Assembly (NCBI GenBank): GCA_047495785.1
Contig: JBLDXI010000020.1
Location: 1,922,001 to 1,986,000, forward strand
Length of the DNA: 64,000 bases
Direction: 5' to 3'
From: Lepidodermella squamata
Lineage: Eukaryota > Animalia > Gastrotricha
Program-made: the position numbers and the translations under genes
Notes under the pieces: model-generated
The model's input: only the letters and a program-made list of their open reading frames with translations
What the model was told of the DNA's origin: nothing
Database searches by the model: none
Shown here: positions 3,096-64,000 of the stretch, piece by piece
How the letters are laid out: every line of letters starts with the position of its first letter
How positions within the stretch are numbered: the first letter of the stretch is position 1

Positions 3096-3559
3096 TTAAT
3101 TGAGTTTACAACCCATCTGTAGCAGAATCAGTTTGTCTTTCAGCGAGCTTTGGACACATTGGAACAATTTCGTCAGATTTTTCTAAATAGATGAAAAAAA
3201 TTGAGTAAAATATGAAAAAAATCATAAAATTCGCTGGTTACCTTGAAGCATTTCATGCACGATTTATCTGCTGTTCGGGTTGTTTCACTCTCTATCCAAG
3301 TTGCCAACCGTCTCGGCAGGGGCGCCTTCGTTGTCGGAGGTTCAGTCGGAGGCGGTGTAGCTTTCTCCGTCGCGTTTTTATCAATTCTATTCAGAATATC
3401 GACTAAATTGATGGCTGTCCGCATGCTGATTCGATATTTACTCGGCTTTTTGACTGTTCCATCACTCGACGAACCCGATGGGGCGAAATTAGCGCTTTCG
3501 GACGAGGCGATTGCGCAACAAATTGAGGCGAGGCAGGTAATTAATACTGTTAAATTCAT
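3096..3559 (-). CDS. Secreted 4-Cys peptide precursor, family A (C-x2-C subtype)
   Basis: Signal peptide MNLTVLITCLASICCAIA. Exon 1 3559-3242, GT-AG intron 3241-3183, exon 2 3182-3096 gives ...SCMKCFK|KNLTKLFQCVQSSLKDKLILLQMGCKLN*. Paralogue of the 6729 gene with the same intron position. Confidence 0.8.
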
Positions 3560-4107
3560 TATTTTATTAAAAAATCTATGAATTAAGATTATAAAATCAT
3601 TAAAGCTAGAATAAGGTCACGCGCCCAAACAGGAAATGAGATTTGCCATATAATTCGACAAAAATCCAAAATAAATAGCAAAAGTCCGTAAGCGAATTTC
3701 GGCGTTCCATGGAAATGACGCAGTCACGAGTCACATCGATGACATTTTGATGAATTCAAGGAATTTGCCGTGTCTGCAGGGGTTATAATATCGGATTTCG
3801 CATTTTGTCTCGAAAATGCAGCTTGAAAATTAATTAGCAAATCCGATAATGTTATTTTGATCCCGCTCATGGCATGTATTTTTGCCAAAAAAACACGCAT
3901 TTTCTCACTTGTGCGATGATTCATTGCAAAATCGATCTTATAATGTATATAGATTTTTCGCGAATATAACACGACAAAAAAAATCGATCGAGTTGCCTTG
4001 ACAACGGCGACGCACATGTGCGAATAAAACAATTCGAGTGGATAAAAAACTTAGTGCAAGCTACCAATAGAGATATATAGTAACAAAATCGAACTGTATT
4101 CTTAACG

Positions 4108-6244
4108 ATGGGCCAGGGAAACAGCAAATTTTCGTGCGAGGAATTCTGCTGCTCACAGGGTGTTACAAATATCGGCGAGGAGTGGATCAAAGAGCATGGA
4201 TCTTTATACCAAAATGACCAGCTGCCGAATAAGGTTCGAAAATTCTAAAAAAAATTGCCAATATTTTTACCTGGATTTTTTTAGATTGAGAAATGTTTCG
4301 AAATTACGATAGAAATTTTCTCAATGTTTCACATATTTATCGCAGTTGGAATTTTGATTTTCGGAATCTACACCTACGCCCTTCGAAATGAAATCCAGCA
4401 CGGGACAAGTAAAATGGCTCAAGACGGCTTCATCTACCAACTAACCATGGTCCCGGTGTACCTAATAGTCATGGGTTGTCTCGTGATAATAACGTCAGTT
4501 CTCGGTCTTGCTGGTGTTTTTCGCCACCATTTACCGCTATTGATGACCTACTTGATCTTGCTGTTCACCTATTCGATACTTCAACTGATCTTCGCATGCA
4601 TCGCACTGACCCAGCGGAATAGGATCGAGGCTTCTATTTACAACTATTTTTCCGGCGATGCTATTGTCAACTATCGCGAGGATATCGACCTTCAAAACAT
4701 CATTGGTAATTTTGATAAATTGATTTTGGTAATTGGTTACTTTTGACATAAATTTGGCATAAATATACATAATTATGTAAACATTTCAAATCACACTTTT
4801 CAATTAATTCGAGTTGGAATCATTGGGAAATTTTACATTACTAGTACGCTTTCGGTTTATAAAGCAAATACGTGCTTCCGATGACGTAGGCATTTTTTCC
4901 CCTTGAAAATGGTTATTGGTGAAGTTCAAGGGTCTATAATCGAACTTGGTAATACCCCAAACACGACCTAACCCTAACCCTAACCCTAGCCCGAACCCTG
5001 ACAACTAAGCCTATAATCCTAACCCCAATTCCTAATCATCGTTTTGCTAAAAAAAATTTAGCCAAAATCGGTTCGGAAAATTGAATTACACTAAATGGTC
5101 ATGAATGCTGCTTGGCATTACTTGGTTTCGGGTAAAATTTACTGTCAGATTTTTTTATACTATAATTAAGGCTGTCGATAAACTCAGACATTTGTCTGAT
5201 GTCTGAAATGGAAAAAGTTTCACCCCGCTCAAAAATTGACTTGAATGGAGCGTGGACCTTGAAGAGCTTCGGCGGGGCTGAAGTGCCTCTCTAAAGCAAT
5301 GAAGCGACTTTTATATCGAAAAATGATGAAACCAAAATTTCAGTGTTTGATTACTTCATAGGTTCGCATGAAAAGTAGTCTGCTTAAGCATAAATAAAAT
5401 AATCAAGTTGGAGACGTCAAATAATGCGAGGATACGCTAGTATTAATAATATATAAATTGTATGAATTAACCGAGGAACGGGGATTAAACAAATTAACAC
5501 CTAAAAAACTTGCGGAAGTTGGTTTTCGAGGATTGCGGAAGTGTGAATGCAAAGTAGAGGTTATTCCCAGACACTTTTCATTGTAATTCGGGCGTAAAAT
5601 GTAAAATATGTGCACCCACATTTTGTCCCATTAATTTGCCTGCAAATTCGGAAGGAAAAATCGAGTTATAAAATAGAAAATTGTAAATTAAAATCCCAAA
5701 ATTTCCAGATTATTTTCAAATCGAATACGATTGCTGTGGCGCTTCCGACGGGGCCGGCTACCTGGATTGGAGCAAAAATCCGTATTTCAAGTGCACGAGT
5801 GGCAACCCGAGTGTCGAAAGGTGCGGCGTGCCGTATTCTTGCTGTTTAAACTCGACTATCGACGACATGGGCCCGAAAAACACCTATTGCGGGTTCGAAG
5901 CTCAACGCAAAACTGTCGAAGCCGCTGGAAAATACATAGCCACCCAAGGATGCGTATCAACAGTTTTCACTAAGATGGCTTATTACGGTAAAAAAACATC
6001 ACGTGCAAAAAACGATTGAATTATTTTTTAATTTTAAGGTGGAGCGATAGTTGCGGCAATCTGCGCGTTAATAATCGTCCCAATCGTGTTGGAAATTATG
6101 TTGGTTCTGCTGATTCGAGACGTTTACGATGAAATGCGGGCCTACAAAGAATGGGAACGGGCTATGATGAGTAATGACCCCAAAGTCCGAGCTAGGGCAG
6201 AAGCAGCAGCGGAAACCGCGGCCGAAGACACTTCGCCACTGTAA
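4108..6244 (+). CDS. Tetraspanin, TspanC8-type (TSPAN5/14/15/17/33-like)
   Basis: Exons 4108-4233, 4285-4705, 5709-5987, 6039-6244. Four hydrophobic segments; large loop has CCG, ERCGVPYSCC, YCG and GC, totalling 8 Cys. Confidence 0.9.
4803..5050. repeat. Dispersed repeat with telomere-like (TAACCC)n core in tetraspanin intron
   Basis: cctaaccctaaccctaaccctagccc at about 4967-4992. Flanks (aattcgagttgga, atcatcgttttgcta) match the reverse complement of 22455-22620. Confidence 0.6.
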
Positions 6245-6728
6245 TGAAGTTATAAAAATGACGTGACTTTAGGAGCCAAAAATAAATGTCTATGCATTAA
6301 TCGAATATTCTGCTTAATTTACATGTAAAATTAGAACTTCACCCGATGAACTTTTTCCTTTTAAATAAAGCCAAAAATATTTAATTAGTACTAATTGAGT
6401 CTGAGTATTTTTTCTTAATTGGCGCGGTCATTTTCCGGGCTGAAAAAATGTCCGCAAAACCACGGTGGGCGTTACGCGAGACGGGGCATTTCTGTAAATA
6501 AAATAAACAGAGCGTGACGTGTTACACTCAACTTGATTTAATTATTCGCGTGACGTGCTGATTTAATTTTTGGCTATTTCCCGCCTGTCTATGGTTACGT
6601 TATATATTATCCTATTTCCGGCATTTCGTAACTTGCGAAATGGGCATGGCTTATAATCCTGAGATGAAGTCAATTTTTTCGATTATTTCTCTTCTTCTTC
6701 TTCAATCAGTTTTATAGGTTTTGTAAAT

Positions 6729-7167
6729 ATGAATTCAACCTTGATTTTTTCCATTTTTGCGGCCTTTATCCTGGCTATAGGACATGTATCGGCTCAGGAT
6801 TTGCCGAATTTCGCTATCGATGCCAACAAGGCGCTGGCTATTGTTGATCAATTAGAGGCCTTGAAGGCGAACAATTACCAACCGAAACCAACAAATACAC
6901 CTAAAAATGACACAAAAGTCGAGCTATCGAAGCAAACATCAAAGAAATTGGCGAATAAGCTTGAATCGAACCTTCGACGCGCCACCAATCAGGCATGCTT
7001 GACTTGCTTCAAGGTAAAAGAATTCAAAGTAAAAATTGAAAATTTATTCTCCAATTTTCCAGGGAAATTTGCCGAAACTCTTGCGATGCTTGGGATCAGA
7101 GCTTCGCGAAGCTATTATTTTCATCCAATTTTCATCATGTGCCGGAGCAACGTTTGCGAATTTCTGA
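6729..7167 (+). CDS. Secreted 4-Cys peptide precursor, family A (C-x2-C subtype)
   Basis: Signal peptide MNSTLIFSIFAAFILAIGHVSA. Intron 7014-7062; spliced C-terminus LRRATNQACLTCFK|GNLPKLLRCLGSELREAIIFIQFSSCAGATFANF*. Dibasic RR precedes the Cys domain. Confidence 0.8.
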
Positions 7168-7342
7168 GCATTTCTGCCCAGTCAATGGCATTTTATTCAT
7201 GTGACTACAATTTTTCAAAATAGCGTAGTTTTTTCGCATTCGAGATGAATAGCCTTTTCACAGTATCCATACAACCCTAGTAACGCTCATTTTCTCAGCA
7301 CTTATTTTTTGGCAGAATAAAAACAAACAATTTTTTTCGAAA

Positions 7343-9363: not shown

Positions 9364-11888
9364 ATGGAAATAATTCTTCTAATTATCTGCGTTGTCGCCG
9401 TCCTTTCAAATGAGACAGGTAATTAAGAGGAAAATTCCGCTGAATTAATCAATTATTTTCGGAAATTATCTAGGTCAAGATAATCAAATAATAATGCCAG
9501 CTCATGACCCACTTTGGTTTTTATTTCGCAAAAAAGAAACTCCGCCGAGATTAGGAAAAGTTTTCCACTACGTAAATTCGACAAAATCAACCCCGAAATC
9601 CACCATACAGGCTACGTCGACCAAGCCGCCGACTACTGCTGACACTCGAAGCGATAAACCTGAGCCGCCCATGTCGAATGAAAATCGAATAAAGCGGATG
9701 TTGTTGACTGAAAATGATTACTATGACAAGACATCGCGGCCGGTCGATGAAGATGCCCACAATGTGACGGTTCAAATCGGCATTTCTCTCTTCCACATTT
9801 TGGAAATGGATGAAAAATTTCAAACCATCACCTTCCTTCTCGCAGTTCGGCTGGTGAATTTAATTTAAATTATTAAAATTTTACTAATTAATTTTAATTT
9901 TCAGAGATGGAATGACGCAAATTTGAAGTGAGTTAAAAATTCGAAAATTCTGGATTTTTCATTTTTTTTTAAATTAGTTGGGATCCTGATGACTACAACG
10001 AGTTGGACAAAATCCTTGTCCCTTCAGAGACATTATGGCGGCCGGATATTCGAATCGCAAATTCAGTCGATTACGCCGAACCAGCGGCCACAAATGCCAT
10101 CATCTACTCCTCAGGCGATGTTCTCTGGATGTCACCACAAAGCATCAAACTCTACTGCTCTTTGGACCTTCGAAATTTCCCATTCGTAAAATCTCCAAAT
10201 TAAAACTTCAAGTACACTATATTTTTGTTTAGGATACCCAACATTGTGAAATTCAATTTTTTTCTTGGACGTATAACGGCTTCCAAGTTGACCTAATTCC
10301 GGAACCAGGTCAATCCAGTTTTTATTCCGGCGAGAACCAGGAATGGACGATTCGCAATATTACGAGTCATAGAAGCGTCGCCTTTTACCCATGTTGCCCT
10401 GAACCTTACCCGATCGTCAGCTTTGGCGTCAACATCAAACGCGGGGCAATGTTCTACATTTTCAACCTTATTTTTCCGTAAATTTAGAAAACTGCTAAAA
10501 TATTTTTTGAATTTTTTATATTTTAGTTGTGTGTTGATTTATGGGGTTGCCTTGCTTGGATTTTTCCTACCGATTCAATCAATTGAAAAAATTAATTTGG
10601 AGGTAACTGTTTTGCTGGCTCAAGTCGTCTTTCTGCAAGTAATTGGCGATACGATGCCTGCGAATCCTGAAAAATTGCCCCTGCTTGGCTGGCTGTAATC
10701 AACTTTTTTCACAAGTTTTCCCAACTTTGAGCTGCCAATTATTTTTAGTTACGCAGCAACTATGCTTCTGGTTTCAATCGAACTCGTAACCGCTGTAATG
10801 GTGACCAACATATACTACAAAGGAAAACACGGCGAGACTGTGCCTTATTGGTTTTATAAAATTATTTTCTGGAACAAAATCAATCAAAGGTGTTGGACGT
10901 GTGGGAAGCTTAGATTCGTATGTTCCTTTCGACCTCATAAACTATGTCTCTTAGTTCCATGAACTAGATCCTATACCAAGGAAACAAAATTAATGCCAAA
11001 AATCTCGACGAGGAAAAGGTGAAATCACAAAAGTTTCATAAAAGCACGGTAATTTTTTTGAAAAATCCTCCTTAAAAAATTATTTTCTTATTTTTTCCAA
11101 AGATTGCGAGCTTGGCTGATAAGGCCTTTCAATTAATTCGGTTGGGTAAAGATGCGAATCTGGAACACAAAGATGTTTTGACATCTCTAAAGGATGACCA
11201 AAAGCGAAATAATAGATCCAGCAGTGGTCATTACTACAAGAAAGTAGCAGCTCCTCCGGCTTACCAACCTCGGCCTGTGGCCAGCCTCGAGGAAACCCGG
11301 CAAAAATCAATGTCCCTAATCGATTTAGCTTCAAATTTACGTAAATCGACGCTGAAAAAGATGATAAATGAGCCTGTTAGACAGCAGGTCAGATTTGGAC
11401 ACCCTGATCAAAGTAGGTTGACCTCGCAAAAACGAGCCACCTCGGCAACTTCGGTTCATTTGCCCCCAGGAAAAATCCAATACCATCACCAAGCTAACGG
11501 ATTCGATGCAGTGTCTTATGTGGAACCGAATAATGCCCATCACCGTCGTAGAAGGTTTCACCAGGTTGAGCCCGTTGTTTTGATGCCTCCAAAGCCGGTT
11601 CTGATTGAAAATAGCAACGGTGGTAGTCGGAAGAGTTCTATTCAAAGCAACCAACTCGATCAAATTTCTCTCATGTACCAAGCTGATTCGGCTGATGACC
11701 ATGGCATGGGGCCGCATGGTGGCGGGAAAATGAATAACGTCATTCGAACAAGCGAGGGTTGTATTCACATTATCATTTCGTGGCGTGAAACTGCTGAACG
11801 GCTGGATGGTCAACTTTTCTGGGTATTTGTCATCGCTAGTATTGCTGTGTTCGGATTCCTGCTATCGAGTGCTCAGGAGAAGGATTAG
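9364..11888 (+). CDS. Nicotinic acetylcholine receptor-like alpha subunit (Cys-loop channel), divergent
   Basis: Multi-exon gene. Signal peptide, YDKTSRPV, LWRPDI, Cys-loop CSLDLRNFPF|DTQHC, loop B SWTY, vicinal YPCCPEPY, M1-M3, long intracellular loop, M4 after WRETAERLD. Includes a 23-nt micro-exon at 9905-9927. Confidence 0.93.
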
Positions 11889-13334: not shown

Positions 13335-13913
13335 ATGGCTTCCAGGCGAAGATTTTCATCAACGGCGAAGGCCGTCTTGTTATCGACATTGGTTGCAATT
13401 TTAATAATTTTCGGCAGTGCTGAACGGGTGACTGACTATGGAGGCTGCCAAAATATCTACGATTATTGTATCGATTCGCTGAAACTTCCTTCCGTAACTT
13501 TCAACCGCCTTTACCGACTTGCTTCCGCTATTTCTTTGACTCTAACTAATCCAAAGGTAATTTTGAAAAAGCTTTACAAAAATTGAAAAATTTATGAATT
13601 AATTATGAAAATTATTTTATAAATATTTTTAAGCTGGCTTTTTTATTCTTTTTAATTCATTTTTTAGTATTGTGGCAGTCGGCAAAGTAACAGCAGTTTA
13701 GTCACAGGGTGTACGGTTCTATCGAAATTTGCCTACTGCACATCGAACGTTGATGCTCGGCGCGAATGCTCGCTGTTCGAAGACCCGGCAACCTCTAACC
13801 CTGACTTCTTTTTCGCCATGAAAAACTGTGGCGATTTCTGCGGCGTCGGCCGTGCGACCTGGCTAAATCTCGGCGACACGAGCAGCGAAAGCGAGGCCGA
13901 TGTTAGGACTTGA
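13335..13913 (+). CDS. Secreted 8-Cys protein, family C
   Basis: Hydrophobic N-terminus. Intron 13557-13667; exon 2 YCGSRQSNSSLVTGCTVLSKFAYCTSNVDARRECSLF...FFFAMKNCGDFC... aligns Cys-for-Cys with the 17203 and 20115 proteins. Confidence 0.8.
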
Positions 13914-17202: not shown

Positions 17203-17685
17203 ATGCTACCAAATATTCCGAGAAATCTGGCTGGCCTCATCGGAGCTGTTGTGAAAACATGGCTATTGGTCGTTCTGTTGGTCACCTCAGTACCATCAAC
17301 GACATACGCCGAGCCTATTAAGGCTTCAAAGCACGCTCGAGCTGTTCCTATGGGCTCGCTAGGCGGCGATGGAATGCTGGAGGAACCCGGTTGCGTCAAT
17401 GTTTACAACTACTGCGTGGAGAGGCTCGACCTGGCCGGTATTACGTTCCCAGTCTTCGACAAATTGGCGACCACCCTAGCAGTTGTGCCCCTCGTCGGCA
17501 GCCGCGGCCATTGCCCGACCAAAGTGCTAATATCATGCGAGCTGGTGTCGAAGTTTGTCTCGTGTGCGAACAGCCTCGACGTGAAGCGATCGTGCCTGCT
17601 CACCGCTAGCCGGCCGCACTTTTTCCACGCCCTGAAAAAATGTTCGACAAGCTGTAAAACCGACGTGGGCGTTGTCTTGCAATGA
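17203..17685 (+). CDS. Secreted 8-Cys protein, family C (intronless CDS)
   Basis: 160-aa ORF with signal-like hydrophobic stretch; EPGCVNVYNYCVERLDL...CPTKVLISC...CLLTASRPHFFHALKKC nearly identical to 20115. Confidence 0.85.
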   Translation: MLPNIPRNLAGLIGAVVKTWLLVVLLVTSVPSTTYAEPIKASKHARAVPMGSLGGDGMLEEPGCVNVYNYCVERLDLAGITFPVFDKLATTLAVVPLVGSRGHCPTKVLISCELVSKFVSCANSLDVKRSCLLTASRPHFFHALKKCSTSCKTDVGVVLQ

Positions 17686-20114: not shown

Positions 20115-20564
20115 ATGCTAATACCGAGAAATATTTCAAGTTTACTCGAAACTATGAAGCAAACTTGGCACTTGGTCTTACTGTTGGTATCAGCGCCGTT
20201 GTCTATTGAAGGTTCAAGGCAAGCTAGGTCCGTTCCAACCAATGGATTGCTGGAGGAACCTGGCTGCGTCAATGTTTACAACTACTGCGTGGAAAGACTC
20301 GACCTGACCGCAGTTACGTTTCCAGTCTTCGAAAAATTGGCAACCACCCTAGCGGTTTCTCACCTGGCCGGAAGCCGCGGCGTTTGCCCGACCAAGGTGC
20401 TAATATCTTGCCAATTGCTGACAAAATTCGTCGCCTGCTCCAACAACCTGGACGTGAAGCGATCGTGCCTGCTCACCGCCAGCCGGCCGCATTTCTTCCA
20501 CGCCCTCAAAAAATGCTCGATAACGTGTAAAACCGATGTCAGCCATCTCCTTTTGCAAAGATGA
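20115..20564 (+). CDS. Secreted 8-Cys protein, family C (intronless CDS)
   Basis: 149-aa ORF, close paralogue of 17203; Cys domain conserved while the N-terminus has diverged. Confidence 0.85.
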   Translation: MLIPRNISSLLETMKQTWHLVLLLVSAPLSIEGSRQARSVPTNGLLEEPGCVNVYNYCVERLDLTAVTFPVFEKLATTLAVSHLAGSRGVCPTKVLISCQLLTKFVACSNNLDVKRSCLLTASRPHFFHALKKCSITCKTDVSHLLLQR

Positions 20565-29139: not shown

Positions 29140-29445
29140 TTAATGGAAGTCCTGCATAACGCCGCCGACAATGGGAAGAGAACCGGTGATAGATGTACCG
29201 ATACTACCCAGCAATTGGGATATCATGTTCGTTTCTCGGCCTGTAGCCTCCGGACTCTTGGTCGAGACTTTTGTAGCAATCCTGACAAAAGCAGCGCCGA
29301 ACCCTGCGCCTTCATGGCGATGCCCCTGATGCGTATTGCAGACGGTAACTCCAACCTAGGACATTCAGTTGATAGTGAAAAATCGAATTTTCCAGCTTCA
29401 AAAGCTCACCAGTATGAATGCAATTATAGTGACTTGGCGAAGCAT
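29140..29445 (-). CDS. Secreted His-rich peptide precursor, family B
   Basis: MLRQVTIIAFIL|intron|VGVTVC-NTHQGHRHEGAGFGAAFVRIATKVSTKSPEATGRE...QDFH*. The 36-nt first exon and phase-0 intron are shared with paralogues. Confidence 0.75.
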
Positions 29446-30160: not shown

Positions 30161-30268
30161 TTTAAGGCAAGCTCTTCAGATCGCCGTTCCCGAAGTTCGC
30201 TGATGACTGGAAGAATGTTTGCTGTTGTGTACTGATACTACTAATGGCTCCGGATATGCTGTTCGCAA
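30161..30268 (-). pseudogene. 3' fragment of a family B gene
   Basis: Reads ANSISGAISSISTQQQTFFQSSANFGNGDLKSLP*, matching the 31116 copy; 5' part lost at a short tandem duplication aagctttaggattg. Confidence 0.65.
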
Positions 30269-30791
30269 GCTTTAGGATTGAAGCTTTAGGATTGAATGAC
30301 TTCATCCATGTGGAGAGGCTTAACGAGGTTTTTTACTGTTTTAGCCGAGTATCAGCTCATCAACGCGCCGTGAACCGAGAAGATCAAGATTGGAACCCAC
30401 TGGAAAGTTCCTCATCCACGAAACCCGATTTGAAATAGCTTTTTGAATACTTTGAGGAACGTGTGCCAAATTTTCTTATAGCCGCCAGTTTCAGCTAGTC
30501 GGATGAATGCTGATAAAAAATCGGTTACTCAGATTCCACAGAGCATCGAAACAACTTGGAACCTTTGGCAAGAGCAATGAAGAGCAACTTGCTGTATCGG
30601 ATGTAATATTTCCAAATAATGATGTATTTTAAATTAAAAAATGAAACAGAAGTAATTCTCAGCAGTTTATTCCACCGACAACCGATTCCCATTGATTTCA
30701 TCATCCCTGCTTTCAACTCGACAAAATATGAACATGTTTAATAGAAGCCCTTCAGGTCGTCCTTCCCCATGTCGGTAACCGCGTGTCTATA

Positions 30792-31116
30792 TCACGGCTG
30801 ATAGATCGCCGTTTTCGAAGTCGGCGATCCCATTGTTAAGGACTGGAAGTAGGTTTGCTGTTGTGTACTGATACTAGTAATGGCTCCGGATATGCTGTTC
30901 GCATCTCGGCCTGTAGCCTCCGGGCTCTTGTTCGTGATTTTGGTTGCTACCCTGACGACAGCAGCGCCGAACCCATGGCCTTCCTTATGATGCCCGTGAT
31001 GCGTGGTGCAGACGGCAACTCCAACCTAGGAGATTCGGTTTACATTGAAGAATTCGAATTTTCAAGCTTCTAAAGCTTACCAAAATGAATGCAACAAAAG
31101 TGGCCTGGCGGAGCAT
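30792..31116 (-). CDS. Secreted His-rich peptide precursor, family B
   Basis: MLRQATFVAFIL|gtaag..ag|VGVAVC-TTHHGHHKEGHGFGAAVVRVATKITNKSPEATGRDANSISGAITS...; C-terminus appears frameshifted relative to paralogues. Confidence 0.75.
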
Positions 31117-32582: not shown

Positions 32583-32944
32583 TCACTGACAATTTTTATC
32601 CACAAAGGCCATTCGGTTTTCAGCCTTTTCTTGGACACATCCGCGAGTTCGACCCTGTGATAATCATAATTGTAATAAAATCATAGTCTCATGTTTTTAC
32701 TCTAATTCCTTACAATGCTTTCGCAACTTATTCGACATTGTGTCTGTGTTAAGTTGTCAAGCGCTGTTGCAGCCATGAGTTCCAGTTCGGCTAGTTCAGC
32801 ATCGCATAGCTCGCTGATAGCTTTTATGAGCATATCCTGCTCAGCCAACGATCCAGCAATACTGTTTCTGATAGGCTGGGACAAAGATCTGGCCACCAAA
32901 GCCGCGGCGAGAGCTACAGGTATCAATAAAGCTATAGTGCACAT
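32583..32944 (-). CDS. Secreted 4-Cys peptide precursor, family A (C-x3-C subtype)
   Basis: Signal peptide, acidic pro-helix DAELAELE, intron 32713-32655, Cys domain QCRISCESI|GRTRGCVQEKAENRMAFVDKNCQ*. Confidence 0.8.
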
Positions 32945-35132: not shown

Positions 35133-35392
35133 TTATCTTCGGCTAATTAATGTATCATCAACCGGGCTCATAAATGCATTATCTATCCGATCCCGATTTT
35201 CTCCGGATCTTGCGGCAGGTTTTGTGAGGATTTGCACTAACACGTTGCTCAAGTTAGGGTGGTCGTGATTCTGTCCATGATGCTGGGCGCAAATCGCAAG
35301 ACCAACCTATCAAGGATTCAGTAAAAAAATCGAAATTTCCAACTGCTAAAACTTGCCAAAATGAATGCAATAATGGCGATCTGACGCAGCAT
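35133..35392 (-). CDS. Secreted His-rich peptide precursor, family B (GC-AG intron; upstream region disrupted)
   Basis: MLRQIAIIAFIL|gcaagt..ag|VGLAIC-AQHHGQNHDHPNLSNVLVQILTKPAARSGENRDRIDNAFMSPVDDTLISRR*; close paralogue of 48539. Confidence 0.65.
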
Positions 35393-36503: not shown

Positions 36504-36830
36504 TCACGGCTGATAGATCGCCGTTTTCGAAGTCGGCGATCCCATTGTTAAGGACTGGAAGTATGATTGCTGTTGTGTGCTGATACTAGTAATGGCTCCG
36601 GATATGCTGTTCGCATCTCGGCCTGTAGCCTCCGGGCTCTTGTTCGTGATTTTGGTTGCTACCCTGACGACAGCAGCGCCGAACCCATGGCCTTCCTTAT
36701 GATGCCCGTGATGCGTGGTGCAGACGGCAACTCCAGCCTAAGAGATTCGTTTTACAGTGAAAAATTAGAATTTCAAGCTTATAAAGCTTCCCAAAATGAA
36801 TGCAATAATAATAATAACCTGGCGAAGCAT
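36504..36830 (-). pseudogene. Family B copy with mutated splice donor
   Basis: Exon 2 is nearly identical to the 31116 gene, but the donor reads GGAAGC instead of GTAAGC; intron retention meets TAA. Confidence 0.65.
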
Positions 36831-37417: not shown

Positions 37418-37777
37418 TCACTGACAATTTTTATCCATATAGGCAATTCGATTTTCAGGCTTTTCTTGGAAACATCCGCGAGTTCCACCCTGTGATAATC
37501 AGAAATTTAACATAGTATTTTGTTTATTTTGGCTAAAAACGCTTACAGTGTTATCGCAACTTAGTCGACATTGCGACTGTGTCAAATTGTCAAGCGCTGT
37601 TGCAGCCATGAGTTCCAGTTCAGCTAGTTCAGCATCGCTTAGCTCGCTTATGGCTTTTATCAGCATGTCCTGCTCAGCCAACGACCCAGCAATGCTGTTT
37701 TTGACAGGCTGGGACAAAGATCTGGCCACCAAAGCCGCGGCGAGAGCTACGGGTATCAATAAAGCTATAGTGCACAT
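37418..37777 (-). CDS. Secreted 4-Cys peptide precursor, family A (C-x3-C subtype)
   Basis: Paralogue of 32944; spliced Cys domain QCRLSCDNT|GGTRGCFQEKPENRIAYMDKNCQ*. Confidence 0.8.
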
Positions 37778-40554: not shown

Positions 40555-40915
40555 TTAGTATCTGGTTAGCTGAATAGCGGAGCCACATCTTTTCTCGATA
40601 TAATCCGAACGTTTTTCGGGAGATCTCTTAAGGCAGCGTCGGATGTAATTCTGAAATGAAACAAACGTTTTAACGAGAAATTAATTCGTTACTACCAGAA
40701 CTTACGGCGGGTTTGCACATGGTTTTGCACTGCTTTGAGGTAACATCAGCCAGTCCATTGAAAGCTAATGCTTCAATTTCTGCAAGCTCGGCTTCGTTGA
40801 GAAATTTCAGCGCATTAAGCATGATATCCATCAGCTCAGCGTTGACCCCATCAACCGGGACAGCAAAACAGGGAACTGCCATAGCAATGATAATTACAGC
40901 ATAATAAAACTGCAT
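40555..40915 (-). CDS. Secreted 4-Cys peptide precursor, family A (C-x3-C subtype)
   Basis: MQFYYAVIIIAMAVPCFA signal, NEAELAEIE pro-helix, spliced QCKTMCKPA|NYIRRCLKRSPEKRSDYIEKRCGSAIQLTRY*. Confidence 0.8.
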
Positions 40916-41562: not shown

Positions 41563-41939
41563 ATGAAAGTATCAATTGTTATCCTACTTACTTCAACCTG
41601 GTTGCCCGTATCTGGTGTAGCACTGGGGTTTTTGTACGATCTGAACAGCGAGACAACAGCAGCCGACAATGATGAGCTCGGTTTTATTACAGGTGAACAA
41701 GCTAAAACTCGTATGATGCCTGATTCTTCGGCGATTATGATGTGCAAGCTAGCCGCTGTTAGCAAAGCTATTCGAACAGAACTTGGCCCAACGGGGCTTA
41801 ATAAGGCAATCCTCAGGGTCAGCAATGGCTGAAAGCTGTAGCGTCAATGAAGGCGAAGAAATATCAACGCGGCAAAAGTGGCCGCCTTGGCCGCATCGTG
41901 GTAACAGGTCGTTTCGACGTTCCCGAAATTCCTAATTAG
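41563..41939 (+). pseudogene. Family D peptide precursor with frameshift
   Basis: N-terminus MKVSIVILL...GFLYDLNSETTA matches 47190; the homologous C-terminus QWLKAVASMKAKKYQRGKSGRLGRIVVTGRFDVPEIPN* is in another frame after about 41790-41820. Confidence 0.7.
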
Positions 41940-43442: not shown

Positions 43443-43793
43443 ATGAATATTTTCGCCATTACTATCAGCGCTTTTGCAGTCTCCTGTCTTACAGCGTCCA
43501 CGGTAGATCCAAACAACGACGATCGAGATTGGATAATTGGCGCGCTGCAACAATTGAACGACGCCGAACTAGCCGAAATCGAAAAGTTGGCGCTTGACGG
43601 CCTGGATACGGTCACAACTGCACAGTGCGAAACAAAGTGTAAACTTTCCGTGAGTTTTTTTTTAGCTGAATTATGTCTTTTGAAACATTACGGCCCCACA
43701 TTACCACAGGATCTCATTGATCGCTGCCTGAAGCAAGCTCCGGAAAACCGACCCGATTTCATCTTGAATCACTGCAACTGCGATATATACTGA
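43443..43793 (+). CDS. Secreted Cys peptide precursor, family A (C-x3-C subtype, extra fifth Cys)
   Basis: Signal peptide, NDAELAEIE, stop-free 60-nt intron 43650-43709, QCETKCKLS|DLIDRCLKQAPENRPDFILNHCNCDIY*. Confidence 0.8.
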   Translation: MNIFAITISAFAVSCLTASTVDPNNDDRDWIIGALQQLNDAELAEIEKLALDGLDTVTTAQCETKCKLSVSFFLAELCLLKHYGPTLPQDLIDRCLKQAPENRPDFILNHCNCDIY

Positions 43794-46806: not shown

Positions 46807-47190
46807 TCACTTAGGAATATCTACTACATCAAATGACCCGGTGACAACAATGCGACCGTGTCTGTTGTTTTTGCCGCTACGTTGGTGCTTCTGACGCTTT
46901 ATCGACGAAGCCGCTTGCAGCCACTGCAGCCCGCTAGATTTTCTCTGCGCGTCCTTCATGAGCGCTGACAAGTCCGTCACTACTTTGGTTCGCATCGCTC
47001 CGTTGATCATAATCAGTTTGCGCCAGATTGATGTCGAGTTGACGCTCGGTATCGCTGGCATTTCAGCGGGCTCGTCATGTTCAACGGCCGTTGACTCGCT
47101 GTTCATATCTGACAAAAAGCCAAATGATGCCAGCGAAATAGGCAGCAAGGATGATATCAGAATTAAAATTACGTATATCGGCATTTTCAT
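46807..47190 (-). CDS. Secreted peptide precursor, family D (acidic pro-region, cationic C-terminus)
   Basis: 127-aa ORF with signal peptide, dibasic RK/KR sites and basic tail KRQKHQRSGKNNRHGRIVVTGSFDV; paralogue at 41563. Confidence 0.75.
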   Translation of the reverse strand: MKMPIYVILILISSLLPISLASFGFLSDMNSESTAVEHDEPAEMPAIPSVNSTSIWRKLIMINGAMRTKVVTDLSALMKDAQRKSSGLQWLQAASSIKRQKHQRSGKNNRHGRIVVTGSFDVVDIPK

Positions 47191-48268: not shown

Positions 48269-48539
48269 TTATCTTCGGCTAATTAATGTATCATCAACCG
48301 GGCTCATAAATGCATTATCTATCCGATTTTTAAAATCCCGATTTTCTCCGGATCTTGCGGCAGGTTTTTTGAGGATTTGCACCAACACGTTGCTCAAGTT
48401 TGGGTGGTTGTGATTCTGTCCGTGATGCTGGGCGCAAATCGCAAGACCAACCTATCAAGGATTCGGTAAAAAAATCGAAATTTCCAACTGTTAAAACTGT
48501 TACCAAAATTAATGCAATAATGGCGATCTGACGTAGCAT
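48269..48539 (-). CDS. Secreted His-rich peptide precursor, family B
   Basis: MLRQIAIIALIL|gtaac..ag|VGLAIC-AQHHGQNHNHPNLSNVLVQILKKPAARSGENRDFKNRIDNAFMSPVDDTLISRR*. Confidence 0.75.
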
Positions 48540-50612: not shown

Positions 50613-51229
50613 TTAATGGAACCCAATCAGATCTTCATGTGCTGGGTTCTTGATTACTTTTGAAGGTTCCCACTGCGGCTGGTTTTTCGGGGTAACTTCA
50701 TCACTGAGTTGGTTCTTAATAGCATGGGCTGACAGGTTTTGGGCTCGTGAGGATTTGCACCACCACGTCATTGTTCAATTTAGGGTGGTCGTGATGGCTC
50801 TCGTGCTTGGTGCAAACGGCGAGTCCAACCTATAAAGGGATTCGGTTTACAACAATTCGAAATTTCCAACTGCTAAAACTTGCGAAAACGAATGTGATAT
50901 TGGCGATCTGATGCGGCATTTTTCTTAGGAGACGAGTGTAAAATATTATGTTGAATCTTCTATAATGACATTCGTAAGGCGAATTTTTTTAGCTAACGAG
51001 CTGCTCGCACGCCTCAAAAATTTTAACAGCTGCGACGGCGATATAGGCGAGAGGAAAAACCCCTTCTTGAATTTTTACAAATTCCGCAATTTTGCGGCTT
51101 TACTCAGCCCTTTTTTGAAGAAAATATTGTGAATAATAAAAGGATCGGTTAGGTAAAATCTGCCTGAAATTTTCCAACTGCTCAAACTTATACCAAAATG
51201 ATTGCAATGATGGCGATCTGACGCAGCAT
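50613..51229 (-). CDS. Family B locus with duplicated first exon and probable frameshift
   Basis: First exons at 51229-51194 (MLRQIAIIAIIL, GT donor) and 50919-50884 (degenerate, GC donor). Exon 2 from 50829 VGLAVC-TKHESHHDHPK... stops at 50716; a shifted frame continues to EDLIGFH* at 50613. Confidence 0.55.
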
Positions 51230-51586: not shown

Positions 51587-54500
51587 TTATTTGTCTGCTG
51601 CATCATTTTTCGTGAAAATGTCAAAAGGCGTGTCGTCGGCGAGCATGATTAAATACAGGAATAAATTGACCATGCCCGACAAAATTCCGAACGTGACCAG
51701 AAAAATGCGATCGAGAATTCTCGCAATTTCCATCCAATACTTCTGGTACTTGTGTTTACGCTCGTGCCGATTCTCAGCCGCCGTGTCACAGATCAACTGA
51801 TTCGAATCGTCATTGCCCTCCTTATCGCTTTCGGACGTGCTTGAACTGGCAGAATGCAGCCCGAGCTCATAGCCCGGCTCGTTATTGGCGTACTTCTGCC
51901 GTCTTTCATCGAAAGACTGGGCAAGGGTCGAGTGGCCGTCGGTGATGAAAACACCCGATCGCCGATGGCGCTGGTGACACGGGTCGCTGCTATGCGTGAA
52001 GTCCGAATACATGACCTGCTCGTCATTCACGGTCATGCATCGTTGATTATTATGATGATGATGATGATGATGTTGGGTTGGCTTCACGTTTTCGTAAGTT
52101 GAGGTCGGAGGCGAGGTTGGGTCGATGAACGAGCGTCGCTGGGCTCCGAAAACAGGCGACGGCTTCTTTTCGACGTTTTGAATTTTCGGACGACCCACCA
52201 GTTCACCCTCGCAGATTCGCTGGTCGAGCAGGGCCTGTTTGAAGCTTTTCACAACTCGTTCGTTGCCGTAGTTCTGAAGTAGCCAGCTCAGACATCCTGG
52301 AATCGCGTTAGGCTTGATCTGAAAATTTAATATAAACACAATTTTTTCGCCACAATTCCAACTTCCAAATCTTTATCAAGACGAATGTAATTTTTTTTAA
52401 ATAAAAAACAGCTGATTTTCTTAATTTTTCTGTTATTAATTTCTCGAAATTCGAACAAACTTTAAAGCGAAATTTAAATTTCAAAGCTGCATATGCAAAT
52501 GAGCATCTGAAATAATCATAGAGAAATAATCTATGGAAATAATTTTCCGAGGCTCAAGGCTCTAAGACATATTTCGCCAAAATGTCTCGAAATTCACGAA
52601 AAAAGCAAGAGTTACTTTGTTTACTTTCAGTTCAATTTTCAGAATTTTTCGAGCAAAGCTAATTCAAACAATAAAAAAATGTTGTTGTCTCAACTTCAAC
52701 CATACAGCGTGTCCCTTAAGTTCCGCAATTAGCAATTTTTGTAGGAAATTGAACTTTCGATTTTTAAATTCTTTTTGAAGGAAATCTTTCGAAATTAGCC
52801 GTATTCCGGGAAAATCTTCCATTTTTACCTGTGATTTGCCAAAAAAATTAAAATTTACCGGAGGATACCCGAAAAATCCCGATGGTAACTGGTTCGGTAA
52901 TTTTACGATATTTTACCTGGGACCATTTTTTCCGGATTTTGAGATACTTGGTTACTATTCTCATATGAAGATTTTTTGGCCTCTCACTTCAGCGTTTCAT
53001 CTTTAAATTTATCCTTTAAATTTAAATTTTCAAATTTTGTATTGATTTTAGAAAGATGCAATTTCGATCAAATTTAAGTTGAAAAAATTATTTCGAAAAA
53101 AATTACGTTTCGATGAGCTAGATAAGTCACAGCGACGGCCATGACCAAAGCAACGACAACTTCAATCATTGTTGTCACGACAATCATTCCTAAAATCAAA
53201 ATTCAATTAGGGTTATATTTTACGACGAATTTTATCATAAATACCTATAGCTGGTAGCATATCAGCGGTCGGAGGTAGCATTTCGTTCACAAACATCATG
53301 AAAACAACCAGAGACAGCAAAACAGTGACTTCCATATTAACCTTGTCACCACTCTCGAGCGGCAACAAAAAGCCCAAAAACGATAGAATATAGAACAGCA
53401 AACACGGGTAGATGAGGTTCAAAACGTAGAATTGCGATCGGCGTCGCAGAAAAATCGTGAAAGTCACGTCTGGGAACGTGTCATTCGGGCAGCATTCGTA
53501 ATTTACAACATTTCTCGAGACATTTATCTTGTCGACGAACCACTCTTGGTTACGTGGGTTGTAGTAGACGGCGTTGTTGTCCTTCGGATCGGGCTTCAAG
53601 TCAACCTGCCGGCCTGAATACGTCCAGCTGATTAGAACTATTTTACACTTTTGGCAATCGAATGGGAAGAAGAAGACTTGGAAGATGCATTGGCTTTTCA
53701 GAAGAATCGGAAACATCCATAGAACATCGCCGTTTGGCGACACGATTGTGTTAGTTGAGACATAGCCATTTGTCGCCTCGGCTGAATTTGCGAAAACAAT
53801 GTCTGGTACCCAGATTCTTTCGGCTGGAACTGAAATTGTAAAGGGATACACTAGTCAACTATCATTTGATTTGGTATTTATTGTCATGTATCGGTAAGTT
53901 GGACCACCCGCTGGGAGTTAGTTGGACCGATTTCTCAGGAATTTTCGCATACCTGTTGTCAATAGGAAAAGGAATAGGAATAGGAATAGGAATAGGAATA
54001 GGAATAGGAATAGGAAGATTGTTGCTTTCGGTCGATGAATAGGGTAACATTTCTTTGAGCCTGAATTCAGGTAAAAATTCGAAAGTCAGTGAATCAGGAT
54101 ACTCACAGGGCCCTAGTTGAAAACATTCCATGAGCTATAAACTCTATTATTTTGTATCACCCAATCTGGGCGATTGTTTTTCTGGTTACCTCAAAAAGGA
54201 GTTTCTATAAGTTTCAGGTCTACATATGCATCTTAGATTCCCCACACATAGTTTATATTCTAAGGAAATTGGTCATCAAGTTAAACTAACTGTAAAGAGA
54301 TTTGATTGTGTTCGACTTCCATCGCAAAAAGTTGTCCTTCCACCTTAACCGAACTGATAGCAGCGTTGAAATCGTGTGAAATTTCTCGTTCGTGTCCAAA
54401 ATGTTGTAGAGAGAAAAACCGACTCGAACCTGTAACAAATCACTAAAACCATGACATCATATTTTTGACAAAATATCCCACCTGAACAGCGACATTATCA

Positions 54501-55340
54501 TCGGAAACCGGCCGACTCGTTCGGTCGTAGTAGGTCAATAGGATATTTTTTATATCACTCTCGGACGCATTATCGTGGAAAGCTATTGGAAAAAAAAATT
54601 CAATTTTAATTTAAAAAAAACGGGAAAAATTATTGAATCCTACTTAAAACACCGCCGTCTTGAGTGAAATTTTCGAATGTAGTTTTCGTCCATCGACTCT
54701 GAGGCGGCTGGCTGTACCAGCGGTATTGGGACATATTCGGCGTTGCACTAACATCGACTTTGCCCGATATTTCCGGGGCAAGATTAGCCAGTTGCGGCGG
54801 CGGCGGTCCAGCGAACGGATTATCAGAACCAGGTTGAACTTTGATTTCGAAATCTGGAGCAACCAGCTTTTCAAACGACTGAACAACCGGCGCTACCGAT
54901 GGCTCATCCTCAGCCGCCTCCTCCTCTTCTTCCTGCGGCTCATCGGTCCCTGTCGTTTCTTCAGACACTTCAGTTGTCTCAGGAGCAGACGTTGTCGTAG
55001 TCGTCGTCGTCGTTTTCCGCGAAGATCGGCTCCTGCTAGGCGGCAAAGTCGTGAATCTCGACCCGGTCGTAGTCGCGACGCGTTTCTGAGTCGTCGAGGC
55101 GCTGATAACGTTCTTCGAACCGGAAAATTTCCCGGAATTTACGGCGATTCTCGATTCATTTTTAACGCTGCTAGTAGCTGCAACTGGTTTCGACGAAATT
55201 TTAACAGTACCCTGGCTTGGCTTTCTCGCGGTCGACGTTCGAGGCGTTGTTGACCCAATAACGCCCTTTCGACTCACAGCCGAGTCGATTGAGGCGAAGA
55301 TTAGCAGGCCGAAAATCACGAGGCGATGCGCTAACATCAT
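51587..55340 (-). CDS. Nicotinic acetylcholine receptor-like alpha subunit with long Ser/Thr-rich N-terminal extension
   Basis: Signal peptide, about 200-aa S/T/acidic stalk, YYDRTSRPV, IWVPDI, Cys-loop CIFQVFFFPFDCQKC, SWTY, YECCPND, M1-M3, M4 after WMEIARILDRIFL. Confidence 0.93.
53969..54015. repeat. (GGAATA)n microsatellite in intron
   Basis: About 7 tandem hexamers. Confidence 0.95.
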
Positions 55341-56996: not shown

Positions 56997-56998
56997 GT

Positions 56999-59900: not shown

Positions 59901-60712
59901 GCCAGACGCTTAGCCGCCAGGTTGTTCATGAGCCAACCCGTGACGACAATTTCACGACGGGTGGGTACATACTCCGTAGTTCGAAAAGGCCGACCTCGGC
60001 CAGTTCGGGTACTACAACGGCGACTTCTACAAGTACAACACCGACTACAACGACCGCAAGTACAACGCCGTCAACCGCGACGTCGGCGACTACGACGCCA
60101 ACAACGCCACCGGTACCGCGACGACGTACCCCAAGCACGTCAGAATTGCCTGAAACACCGCCCAGAATGCCTTCACCGCCAATAATAACTGGGCCAGCAC
60201 CGTCTACCTCAGACGAAGATAATCGCCATTCATCCATGTCAGCACCGTCAAACATCGACCATTTCAGTCCAATAATAACGTCAACACCAGCCCACAAATT
60301 TCGAATGCAAAACACTGGCCATTTGACAGCATCGCCAGGATTCCACCGACGACCAACACCATTCCAGTTCGGCATGGACTTGGTTAGCCTTGTACCACCT
60401 GTCCAACCGCAATCGGTGGCCCCGCAACACCGTCCAGCCTCGTCACCCGAGAAAAATCAATCAAGCGTGACGACGCCTGAAAAGTCCTCTACTAGCGTCA
60501 CCTCCGACAGAAACTACTCGCTCAATAAGTCAGATCTTGACGCTACGGTCGTACATCAGCCGTATAACCTTCGCACGCGAGTAACTTTCGCCAACCCCGT
60601 CGTTCAAACATCGCCGAAATCCGGCAAGGCACACACTCGAAGAACACAAATCACCAAAATTTCGAGAAAGAAACAATCGTCAAACAATACAGATTCTTCT
60701 CCTACTGTATAG
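56999..60712 (+). CDS. pol: Pol (RT, RNase H, integrase), N-terminally truncated
   Basis: DFRRLN, MPFG, YFDD, TDAS...EREVLAV, HHCC (HDEKCH...CAVC), D-D-E (WDVAGP, NDNA, GHCE); about 320-aa S/T/P-rich tail. Confidence 0.95.
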   Translation: MLSEFKDCFARHRLDIGLCDALEFKVKVEGPPFIQPLRRQSHHEREMVEKEIQDWVKHGIAEPAATPYSSCLLALRKKDGSLRLAHDFRRLNSMTVNDGSHPIPQIWSQFDLLSKARIFSAIDINQAYFHMKVSEDSKQYLGFRSSQGSWTMNRMPFGAQTAPAYWNRLLTFCMTGLLGRIVATYFDDILVFSPNKEQHFRDLRVVLERMRKMNLKIKGSKCQLFRRSITYLGHTISQDGLSIFRDRVSKVQNFPVPTTVSELRAFTSLAGYYRRFIKNFAMIAAPLYELQRKNNFHWNKDAENAFNELKKALISPPCLAFPQFDKKFILSTDASGSGLGYVLEQDQDDGTRRPVAFGSRNLTKAERNYSSCEREVLAVLYGLKQVKPYISPGLNSITTDVITDAAALRTLNTWKDTGGRLSNYLMILQQYPLNIITRRGSTHANADAMSRMPDRATPLPAGINAMTSDLTFDDDVVVDENAYHEGDPFRSLTPCGVNLTRDVLISAQAADRRCRSKKRRLRHNQKQRSKYFIAPDGLLCRYYPASESGYQIVVPESLIVTVLHAMHDEKCHFGVARTLSTLKDRFYFRNYEEITAEYVKSCAVCQIRDHPVKHPRAPMEPIFSRDVNELLTWDVAGPYPTSRRGMRYILIISDHFSGFTLWEPIPDIKSETVIEKLLDWIYIFGSPRALLNDNARYFISKLIEDVTDAFAIRRIKSSAYHQQTNGHCEHLNLVMNNCIAKYVVPGQHLDWCRFVKACCSGYNSSHHSTHRHPPAYLMLGHMPKLAMDWQCSAEKPASQPKTQNELRENHAYGLYDKLRRAFDDVRTRFQLARAREKERYDRSSGNCEPFDIGDLVYLHVPSNRPDVIPKFASRYKGPYSVVARVSPVTYAIRFFDLSGRDILAHRNRLKLAWLRDFPTADRYSQAQQSARSSAKSATKLAAPPGAAAPASTAPRPPAAAASPLPDLRQTLSRQVVHEPTRDDNFTTGGYILRSSKRPTSASSGTTTATSTSTTPTTTTASTTPSTATSATTTPTTPPVPRRRTPSTSELPETPPRMPSPPIITGPAPSTSDEDNRHSSMSAPSNIDHFSPIITSTPAHKFRMQNTGHLTASPGFHRRPTPFQFGMDLVSLVPPVQPQSVAPQHRPASSPEKNQSSVTTPEKSSTSVTSDRNYSLNKSDLDATVVHQPYNLRTRVTFANPVVQTSPKSGKAHTRRTQITKISRKKQSSNNTDSSPTV

Positions 60713-60792
60713 ATTTTATTTGAGCGAAAATTTACTCAACCATTTATTCGAACTGTAAATATTTCTTGATATTTACTCATTAACGAATCTCG

Positions 60793-62919: not shown

Positions 62920-63071
62920 AAATCAAAATCACGAAGTTTTGTATATATATTTATCAGTGATCTTAATTATTGTAAATTCTCTCACAATACCATTTTCGAA
63001 TTTTTCTCTTGCCGTTATACTCCTTGCGTTTTCCCGCTTTCCAGGAGTAAAGCACCATTTCACCTGGGGAA

Positions 63072-63266
63072 TGTGCTATGCGGACGCGCGACACGCAAGT
63101 CGAGCGCGATTGGTCCGCATACCAACCAATAAGCGGCCTGCGTGCCGCAGTATAAATACCGAAACACAATAACAATAAAATGAGGAGTTTTGGATCATTT
63201 CTGCCTGACTGTTATTTACTCTTTATATCGAACCCGTGTGGTATCCGTACCGTGCCGGATATTACA
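63072..63266 (+). repeat. 3' LTR (about 195 bp)
   Basis: TGT...ACA termini after short purine tract ggggaa; CCAAT, TATAAA at about 63151 and AATAAA at about 63174; host duplication starts at the next base. Confidence 0.8.
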
Positions 63267-63386
63267 ATAATATAGGCTATACTACTAATTAATTTCGCCT
63301 CATTAAACTCTCCGGTCAACTCAATTATCGCAATATAAAACAGACAAATTCAAATTTATTCACAGAAATGCATATAAAAGTCTAAA

Positions 63387-63647
63387 CTAAGAGCGAAATA
63401 AAAATATTTTTCGGCCGGATCGTTTGCTTGGGATTGCTCGCGCGAAAATCGAGGACGCTCCAAGATCGGCTCCAGGATCAGCCTGCGGGACGTAGCCGTC
63501 GTCCTCCTCGCTGACTCTTATAGGCAAAGATTTCTCCGAATTGTCTTCATAGTCTTCGTATTCCATGTCATCATAAGAGCAGTAAGCGGGATGAATTGCA
63601 ATGAACGAGAACAAAAATAAAACCGTTAATAAAATGGAAAAATGCAT
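63387..63647 (-). CDS. Duplicate of family E gene 56106-56366
   Basis: Identical translation within the duplicated block. Confidence 0.7.
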   Translation of the reverse strand: MHFSILLTVLFLFSFIAIHPAYCSYDDMEYEDYEDNSEKSLPIRVSEEDDGYVPQADPGADLGASSIFARAIPSKRSGRKIFLFRS

Positions 63648-64000
63648 TTTTTTCGACAAAAACCTTCGCAAAAAACTGGCTAAAGTGACCTTGAAATGAG
63701 AGTGCCAGCGATGTCTAAACTTCAGGTGACCACGCATTATTAAAACTATACCCGCGAGAGTCATAAAAACGTAGAAAAACAGGGATATTGGGGAACTGTC
63801 CACCTGTAAATGAAACCTCGGGAGAGGTAATGACGGTAGCCTTTTCTTAATTTTATGCATAGGTACAAAGTAATTGAAAAAGGGATGGCTCTTCTGAAGC
63901 CCACTGAAATTTTCAAAAAGAATGGTCAGGAGTCAGGAAAATTACCCAGAAAGGCTGGTGACCAAAATTTTCTCTAAATTTATTTTATTTTTCAAAAAAA

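Follow-up and report, generated by a model that had tools for sequence, protein, structure and literature searches.

The toxin superfamilies of cone snails and the nlp/cnc antimicrobial genes of C. elegans are clusters of precursor genes with signal, pro and mature parts. Here we describe a locus of comparable outline in a 64,000-nt stretch of the genome of the gastrotrich Lepidodermella squamata (contig JBLDXI010000020.1, positions 1,922,001 to 1,986,000 of the forward strand; "the window" hereafter means this whole stretch). Within the window, 19 small genes or gene remnants spanning 3096-51229, approximately 48 kb, fall into five paralogous families, A to E. This bears out a first-pass annotation that had claimed about 20 secreted-peptide genes in five families. 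As in the cone-snail and nlp/cnc clusters, the genes are small and in tandem, begin with a predicted signal peptide, have undergone duplication and pseudogene formation and belong to one lineage. Unlike those clusters, the locus is known from its sequence rather than from expression in a gland or during infection, no sequence or fold kinship with them was found, and its ratios of nonsynonymous to synonymous substitution (dN/dS) lie below 1. Gastrotrichs have hardly been studied; to our knowledge, a single genome has been published for the phylum, and the function of its secreted proteins has not been investigated. Judging from gene structure and divergence, we consider it probable that the locus is a birth-and-death array of lineage-restricted genes for small exported proteins, made up of the five families.

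The families were defined by comparing open frames all against all and by tblastn inside the window, using short open reading frames (ORFs) with hydrophobic leaders, and the gene models were rebuilt base by base from the sequence. The term signal peptide denotes a start Met followed by a hydrophobic leader, a heuristic that was partly judged by eye. By this measure a leader follows the N-terminal Met in each of the five families, in agreement with what had been claimed for them. Genome-wide searches cover the 121.2-Mb assembly in its 151 contigs. They gave no match to the nematode SL1 leader, to the nematode cuticle-collagen domain Col_cuticle_N or to the arthropod R&R cuticle domain Chitin_bind_4; as evidence against a nematode or arthropod source this is weak, since the control searches for the two Pfam domains came up empty as well. 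Family A has two genes in the window, B three, C four, D one intact and one frameshifted gene, and E seven copies and a fragment:

3096..3559, minus strand: A1, intact; exon 1 3242-3559 (106 codons, ending CxxCFK and then GTAACC), intron 59 nt, exon 2 3096-3182 (28 codons plus stop, 2 Cys)
6729..7167, plus strand: A2, intact; exon 1 6729-7013, intron 49 nt, exon 2 7063-7167; 4 Cys in the pattern CxxC...C-x16-C
13335..13913, plus strand: B1, intact, divergent; exon 1 13335-13556, intron 111 nt, exon 2 13668-13913; 8 Cys
17203..17685, plus strand: B3, intact, single exon, 160 aa, 8 Cys; RNA-like contig over 17178-17946
20115..20564, plus strand: B4, intact, single exon, 149 aa (136 aa if the Met at 20154 is used)
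29140..29445, minus strand: Ea, intact; exon 1 29410-29445 (12 codons, donor GTGAGC), exon 2 29140-29355
30201..30302, minus strand: fragment of an E exon 2
30792..31116, minus strand: Eb, intact; exon 1 31081-31116 (donor GTAAGC), exon 2 30792-31025
32583..32944, minus strand: C1, intact; exon 1 32714-32944, intron 59 nt, exon 2 32583-32654
35133..35392, minus strand: Ec, frame open; exon 1 35357-35392 with a GC donor (GCAAGT), exon 2 35133-35306
36504..36830, minus strand: Ed; donor GG instead of GT, exon 2 protein 99% identical to that of Eb
37418..37777, minus strand: C2, intact; exon 1 37547-37777, intron 57 nt, exon 2 37418-37489
40555..40915, minus strand: C3, intact; exon 1 40706-40915, intron 55 nt, exon 2 40555-40650
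41563..41937, plus strand: D1, pseudogene; frame shifted by the loss of 16 nt after 41785 as compared with its closest paralogue
43443..43793, plus strand: C4, intact; exon 1 43443-43649, intron 60 nt (in frame), exon 2 43710-43793
46807..47190, minus strand: D2, intact, single exon, 127 aa, no Cys
48269..48539, minus strand: Ee, intact; exon 1 48504-48539 (donor GTAACA), exon 2 48269-48451
50716..50919, minus strand: Ef, open frame; GC donor, weakened leader (MPHQIANITFVF), short exon 2
51194..51229, minus strand: Eg, exon 1 only, no recognisable exon 2

The stop codon of A1 exon 2 falls exactly at 3096, the position from which the first-pass annotation had the cluster start. Its extension of the cluster to 64000 was too generous, since a cys-loop receptor gene occupies 51587-55340 and a retroelement with long terminal repeats (LTRs) occupies 55986-64000. 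The accompanying claim that intact and damaged copies lie side by side held: D1 is frameshifted, Ed is probably splice-dead to judge from its donor, Eg is reduced to exon 1 and one E copy to a fragment, and most other loci are intact.

The families exceed what chance would produce, because reading frame, splice sites and cysteine spacing are conserved among paralogues whose flanks are by now about as different as random sequence. In B3 and B4, for instance, the flanks are 41-49% identical, and within the ORFs the synonymous divergence (dS) is 0.69 and dN/dS is 0.27. Several independent lines of evidence indicate that A to D are genes. The ages of the duplicates are mixed, with young pairs at a dS of 0.04-0.2, old pairs at a dS of at least 0.7, and dead copies besides.

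Selection on the families is purifying. Pairwise Nei-Gojobori dN/dS values ranged from 0.17 to 0.79 over all comparisons (0.17-0.55 for six D pairs), and none exceeded 1. These values run counter to one form of the reading offered in the first-pass annotation, in which all five families would make up a single co-expressed secretory arsenal of toxins, defence peptides or pheromones, produced in one gland or cell type and shaped by an arms race. Effectors in an arms race would be expected to show dN/dS above 1 in the mature region, and by the pairwise test no comparison did so. What can be said for an arms race is that the ratio is raised in the cysteine part of family C and in family E. For C1 and C2 the overall value of 0.32 divides into 0.11 for the leader and helix part and 0.69 for the cysteine part, and the value for Ea and Eb is 0.79.

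Transcription was seen for B3. Run X2 was taken as RNA, and run X1 is a DNA run. One 768-nt contig of run X2, at a depth of 228.6, lies on 17178-17946; it begins 25 nt ahead of the B3 ATG and ends in approximately 260 nt of 3' tail, and the depth in the neighbouring DNA is 0-5. Because the contig is discrete and deep and its flanks are near zero, it does not derive from genomic DNA, and B3 is transcribed. Run X3 contains an identical 438-nt contig inside the B3 ORF. Over B4, which lies 2.4 kb from B3, run X2 has no RNA contig. Within family B the transcript data go against co-expression, since in run X2 even these close paralogues are not expressed together. Among the sites listed for runs X1 and X2, all polymorphisms relative to the assembly are synonymous third-position changes (7 of 7 in B3 and 4 of 4 in B4).

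The proteins of family B have approximately 150 residues and eight Cys, and the family was found only at this locus in the genome. The secretions of gastrotrichs include an elaborate cuticle, egg shells and adhesive. Rather than being bioactive, the products of the families might serve as structural extracellular material, in cuticle scales, in the egg shell or as adhesive. Such a role would suit the very high abundance of B3 in run X2 (depth 228), as well as a weak likeness of B3 and B4 to the insect vitelline-membrane cysteine motif C-P-x6-C-x8-C (E-values of 0.003-0.03). The corresponding Pfam family, Vitelline_membr (PF10542), however, scored only 17.8 bits with B4 (E-value 0.003) and 14.8 bits with B3, under the curated cut-off of 25 bits, and B1 does not have this cysteine spacing. 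The products also have none of the low-complexity repeats typical of matrix proteins and are predicted to be small helical globules. A structural role appears unlikely to us on balance. Between B3 and B4, a high-copy repeat occupies 18053-19452 (run X1 depth of 450-760, vs approximately 76 nearby), and one X1 contig links 18101 to 19452 while omitting 1350 nt, so that the repeat insertion looks polymorphic.

Family C has the most regular architecture. Exon 1 encodes the leader followed by an acidic helix (consensus D-x-E-L-A-E-L-E) and by C-x3-C-x3, and exon 2 encodes C-x14/15-C, giving four Cys in total; the intron is in phase 0 and measures 55-60 nt in the four genes of the window. Thirteen C paralogues on three contigs were compared, 12 of them spliced and one intronless. 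The phase-0 intron, at 49-60 nt, lies three codons after CxxxC in 11 of the 12 spliced paralogues, which also have the C-x14/15-C exon 2. The exception is the twelfth (L018), which is without the usual exon 2. The intronless paralogue (L014, in the G000:C20:2213541 region) encodes 110 aa. It is located on the contig of the window, approximately 230 kb further downstream, and could have arisen by retrocopying or by loss of the intron.

An AlphaFold2 model of the intronless C paralogue has four helices, and its predicted local distance difference test score (pLDDT) is 80-92 in the mature part. When the family C model was used as query, Foldseek gave no match at an E-value below 1, VIA-align only generic helical bundles (best Z 5.5) and a structure-atlas search template modelling (TM) scores of at most 0.45. 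Aplysia attractin and the Euplotes pheromones are small, helical, disulfide-braced signal proteins carried by water. Family C resembles them in being modelled as small and helical, at approximately 70 residues, in being predicted to be secreted and in coming from an aquatic animal. It differs in the number and spacing of its Cys (C-x3-C-x8/9-C-x14/15-C) and in that its structural matches, with Z no higher than 5.5, are generic. Neither C nor A has the pattern of twin CX3C/CX9C helical hairpins: C has one CX3C and then C-x14/15-C, and A has CxxC and then C-x15/16-C.

In family A, exon 1 encodes the leader, a part that is helical and rich in Pro and Thr, and a terminal C-x2-C-(F/Y)-K, which is followed by a GTAA donor; after an intron of 49-59 nt, the short exon 2 adds two Cys spaced 15-16 residues apart. 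A third intact A gene (L036, G000:C20:1909740-1912937, exons 1354-1698 and 1758-1859) lies approximately 11 kb upstream of the window, and the cluster therefore continues past the left end of the window. Counting this copy, family A is confined to this locus genome-wide. Two other assignments were tried and rejected. The A genes are not first exons of the adjoining tetraspanin genes, as A1 is encoded on the other strand, and A1 and A2 each end in an exon 2 and a stop codon of their own. Homology of A with C was dismissed after hhalign of the exon-1 profiles returned a probability of 0.7%. The likeness of A and C is limited to the position and phase of the intron and the spacing of the third and fourth Cys, and we keep it as a lead only.

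Families C and D recur together beyond the window. Genome-wide there are at least 20 C loci and at least 16 D loci. At 4.60-4.67 Mb of another contig (contig C1 of the assembly), ten C and six D genes are interleaved, and on a further one (contig C4) a C and a D gene lie 1.2 kb apart. Some members of different clusters are closely related, with 75% protein identity for C and 71% DNA identity between D1 and L022. The association of C with D is real. The 4.60-4.67 Mb stretch is without A, B, E, tetraspanin or nicotinic acetylcholine receptor (nAChR) sequences, and the adjacency of these other neighbours in the window therefore looks incidental. Most C and D genes, and also B4, have a TATA box approximately 45-60 nt upstream of the ATG, with ATATAA/TATATAA enriched. 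Several C genes and a few D genes, in the window and among loci L004-L033, carry GACAGG/TGACAG 20-40 nt upstream of the TATA box (a mild enrichment, with p of about 3e-5 to 6e-5, uncorrected). As a shared C/D promoter motif this candidate was rejected, its enrichment being lost after correction for 4096 words.

Family D is recognised by an N-terminal FLxDLNxE, a central AMRTK and a C-terminal IVVTxSFDVxDIPK. The C-terminal peptide is still readable in the pseudogene D1, in a different frame. Directly before this 14-mer, nine of ten members have a basic residue (R or K) at P1, often within RxxR or KR/RR, an arrangement that fits processing by a convertase. Prohormone and neuropeptide precursors share with D the signal peptide, the RxxR or KR site and the conserved C-terminal peptide. 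D, and possibly E, could then be precursors of neuropeptides or peptide hormones, with the D 14-mer released at the basic site and acting on a receptor; the absence of Cys and the purifying selection in D agree with this. The N-terminal and central motifs of D are, however, as conserved as the C-terminal peptide, so that it is not a textbook neuropeptide precursor, and the peptide has no terminal Gly for amidation. At least 16 paralogues are also many for one hormone, and no known family was matched. An exhaustive HMMER profile search with family D against 1.84 billion protein representatives found no neuropeptide-like family, only a single 1259-aa coiled-coil repeat protein that we judged to be spurious. 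Precursors of this kind are, in our estimate, an improbable explanation.

Family E is the most variable of the five in its state of preservation. Its exon 1 has only 12 codons (consensus MLRQIAIIAFIL) and splits the signal peptide; exon 2 encodes the rest of the leader (VG[LV]A[IV]C), then X-X-His and a run rich in His. All seven copies have retained the ATG. The six copies that possess an exon 2 have also retained the leader length, the acceptor, the intron of approximately 50-55 nt and the Cys-X-X-His junction, even though DNA identity among the copies is only about 60-70%. A genome search with the Eb-type sequence, the Ec type not being searched, matched this locus only, apart from one chance-level match. 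A genome-wide transposon or non-coding repeat, at first suggested by conservation in several frames, was ruled out on the grounds that Eb-type matches are essentially limited to this locus and that ATG, donor and acceptor are conserved. We read E as a real family with fast turnover and several dead members. Ef, with its weakened leader, is possibly decaying.

Exons devoted to the signal peptide occur in Echinococcus antigen B and the Schistosoma micro-exon genes. E resembles these flatworm genes in its tiny first exon of 12 codons that starts the signal peptide, its short intron and its local tandem cluster. It differs in having one micro-exon only, in showing no sequence similarity to them and in coming from a free-living organism.

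Signal peptidase is predicted to cut E directly after the conserved Cys, a site that obeys the -3/-1 rule with A or T at -3 and C at -1. All five E sequence variants (NTH, TTH, AQH, AQH, TKH) have His as the third residue after this site. Cleavage there would leave an X-X-His N-terminus, the arrangement of the amino-terminal Cu- and Ni-binding (ATCUN) motif, which is defined by a free N-terminus and His in the third position (PMC8277166). Histatins are His-rich peptides that bear this motif (PMC12787115), and E is like them in the position of its His after the predicted cut in every variant and in its His-rich run. Unlike histatins, E shows no sequence similarity to them, is longer (approximately 30-70 aa) and is not strongly cationic, and its cleavage and metal binding are predictions.

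The searches support the claim that the families are unrecognised. In Pfam-A, nothing scored above the gathering threshold for A1, A2, B3, B4, C2, C3, C4 or D2; at the E locus the scan used the plus-strand ORF 29143-29511, which lies opposite to the E genes, so that the E products stand outside it. Word-indexed searches of 5.8 billion protein clusters with B3, D2 and a C profile found no match, PDB sequence searches and two metagenome scans returned nothing usable, and ESM Atlas searches gave scores of at most 0.81, which is noise level. HMMER and other sequence searches, PDB searches and Foldseek-type searches thus gave no relatives. Gastrotrichs are nearly absent from protein databases, and these blanks therefore show that the families are unrecognised, not that they are young, and are weak evidence of novelty.

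The preferred reading, a birth-and-death array of small exported proteins, suggests the following scheme. Each gene would be a separate short transcription unit, and each product would enter the secretory pathway through its predicted N-terminal signal peptide. A and C would form four-cysteine domains, presumably with two disulfides, C being modelled as a small helical bundle of approximately 70 residues. B would be a helical domain of approximately 100 residues with 8 Cys, presumably stabilised by disulfides. D would be a Cys-free precursor of approximately 100 residues, cut by furin or a prohormone convertase before the 14-residue peptide. E would yield peptides of approximately 30-70 residues with an X-X-His N-terminus and a His-rich run, candidates for Cu/Ni binding of the ATCUN type. 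The likeliest role is extracellular, in defence, in surface or gland secretion, or in signalling.

Several points weigh against this reading. No family has a relative of known function, which makes the proposed roles guesswork. For A, B1, C and E the splicing is predicted from sequence alone, the cuts in D and E are predictions only, and the structure model of B3, though helical, is poor (pLDDT 54). The three C and D clusters may go back to one duplicated ancestral block and hence may not be independent evidence of a link between the two families. Region 37400-47300, with its C, D and E content, has no RNA contig listed, which is not evidence of silence. Finally, part or all of E may be decaying. 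Part of the array would then be non-functional, E above all being a locally amplified, decaying segment whose frames are relics. The dN/dS of 0.79 for Ea and Eb, the older pair, would fit decay, as would the non-GT donors of several copies (one GG and two GC), the copy reduced to exon 1, the fragment and the lack of a listed RNA contig. Young E pairs, however, have dN/dS values of 0.18-0.31, and copies that share only about 60-70% of their DNA still have the start codon, the leader exon of 12 codons, the acceptor, an intron of conserved length and the Cys-X-X-His junction. We regard decay as doubtful, if somewhat less so than the structural and hormonal roles discussed above.

What remained of the proposed secretory arsenal is an array of real-looking, predicted secreted and unrecognised families with birth-and-death turnover. 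The dN/dS values throughout, unlike those of typical venom or immune arrays, the recurrence of C and D alone and the RNA for B3 alone did not fit it. The tight packing of five secreted families, their frequent duplication and dead copies, the joint recurrence of C and D in other clusters and the His-rich E peptides with a possible ATCUN end are what such an arsenal would lead one to expect. Set against these are the absence of A, B and E from the company of C and D elsewhere, the failure of any shared promoter motif beyond TATA to survive multiple testing, and the selection and transcript results given above. One co-expressed arsenal is therefore, in our view, still less likely than a structural or hormonal role. 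A bolder version, in which the locus and its sister C/D clusters form a gastrotrich-specific secreted defence or communication system, with E as Cu/Ni-binding ATCUN metallopeptides and with C and D, still interleaved after the duplication of clusters, working as partners (one conceivable pairing being a small helical carrier or receptor-binding protein and a processed peptide), is a long shot.

For the array that we favour, the value is descriptive: five new families, hand-checked gene models and one family transcribed. The recurring C and D pair provides a concrete entry point, and E offers a testable metal-binding motif. The locus opens no long-standing question, and clusters of orphan secreted proteins are to be expected in any newly sequenced phylum.

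The neighbouring genes in the window lie outside the five families:

approximately 4285-6241 and 7253-9164, plus strand: two tetraspanin paralogues
9449..11888, plus strand: cys-loop (nAChR-type) receptor gene 1
51587..55340, minus strand: cys-loop (nAChR-type) receptor gene 2, with a C-x13-C loop and a YxCC motif

The receptor genes are of nAChR type, with Pfam matches to Neur_chan_LBD and Neur_chan_memb at E-values down to 1e-31 and, in the exon at 53213-53851, a C-x13-C loop and YECC. The first-pass annotation had described the families as interleaved with divergent nAChRs. Two such genes do lie in the window, but nAChR and tetraspanin sequences are missing from the C/D cluster on contig C1, so that the adjacency looks coincidental. 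Directly upstream of the ligand-binding exons of receptor gene 2, a 236-aa frame (54630-55340, minus strand) combines a signal-like leader with a mucin-like run rich in Thr and with an acidic stretch, and it may extend the receptor at its N-terminus in an unusual way. At 25676-28425 on the plus strand there are two long open frames (257 and 498 aa) in which Ser, Pro, Arg and Gln abound and which have no Pfam match; they probably belong as exons to a single disordered protein. A segment of 71 nt at 27339-27409 recurs at 35821-35891.

Mobile and rearranged DNA is present both within and beside the array. Between C1 and Ec, 33837-34352 holds a fragment of a Mutator-like element (MULE) transposase (Pfam E-value of 4e-6, just under the cut-off). 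Approximately 340 nt at 35438-35775 recur inverted at 46117-46458 with 97-99% complementarity and bracket the C2-C3-D1-C4 block, and approximately 360 nt at 35077-35437 have a direct repeat at 48213-48584 with 92-96% identity. Together, 35077-35775, 46117-46458 and 48213-48584 represent a recent complex rearrangement. At 38644-40050, inverted repeats of 197 nt, 99% complementary and 1013 nt apart, resemble the ends of a small DNA transposon with terminal inverted repeats. The LTR retroelement at 55986-64000 has LTRs at 55986-56719 and 63267-64000 that are identical over at least 734 nt, the second being truncated at the end of the window. Between the 5' LTR and the reverse transcriptase, neither a gag nor a protease frame was seen. 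Its frames are a 1237-aa reverse transcriptase/RNase H/integrase (56999-60712) and then a 708-aa open frame (60793-62919), which has no Pfam match and occupies an env-like position.

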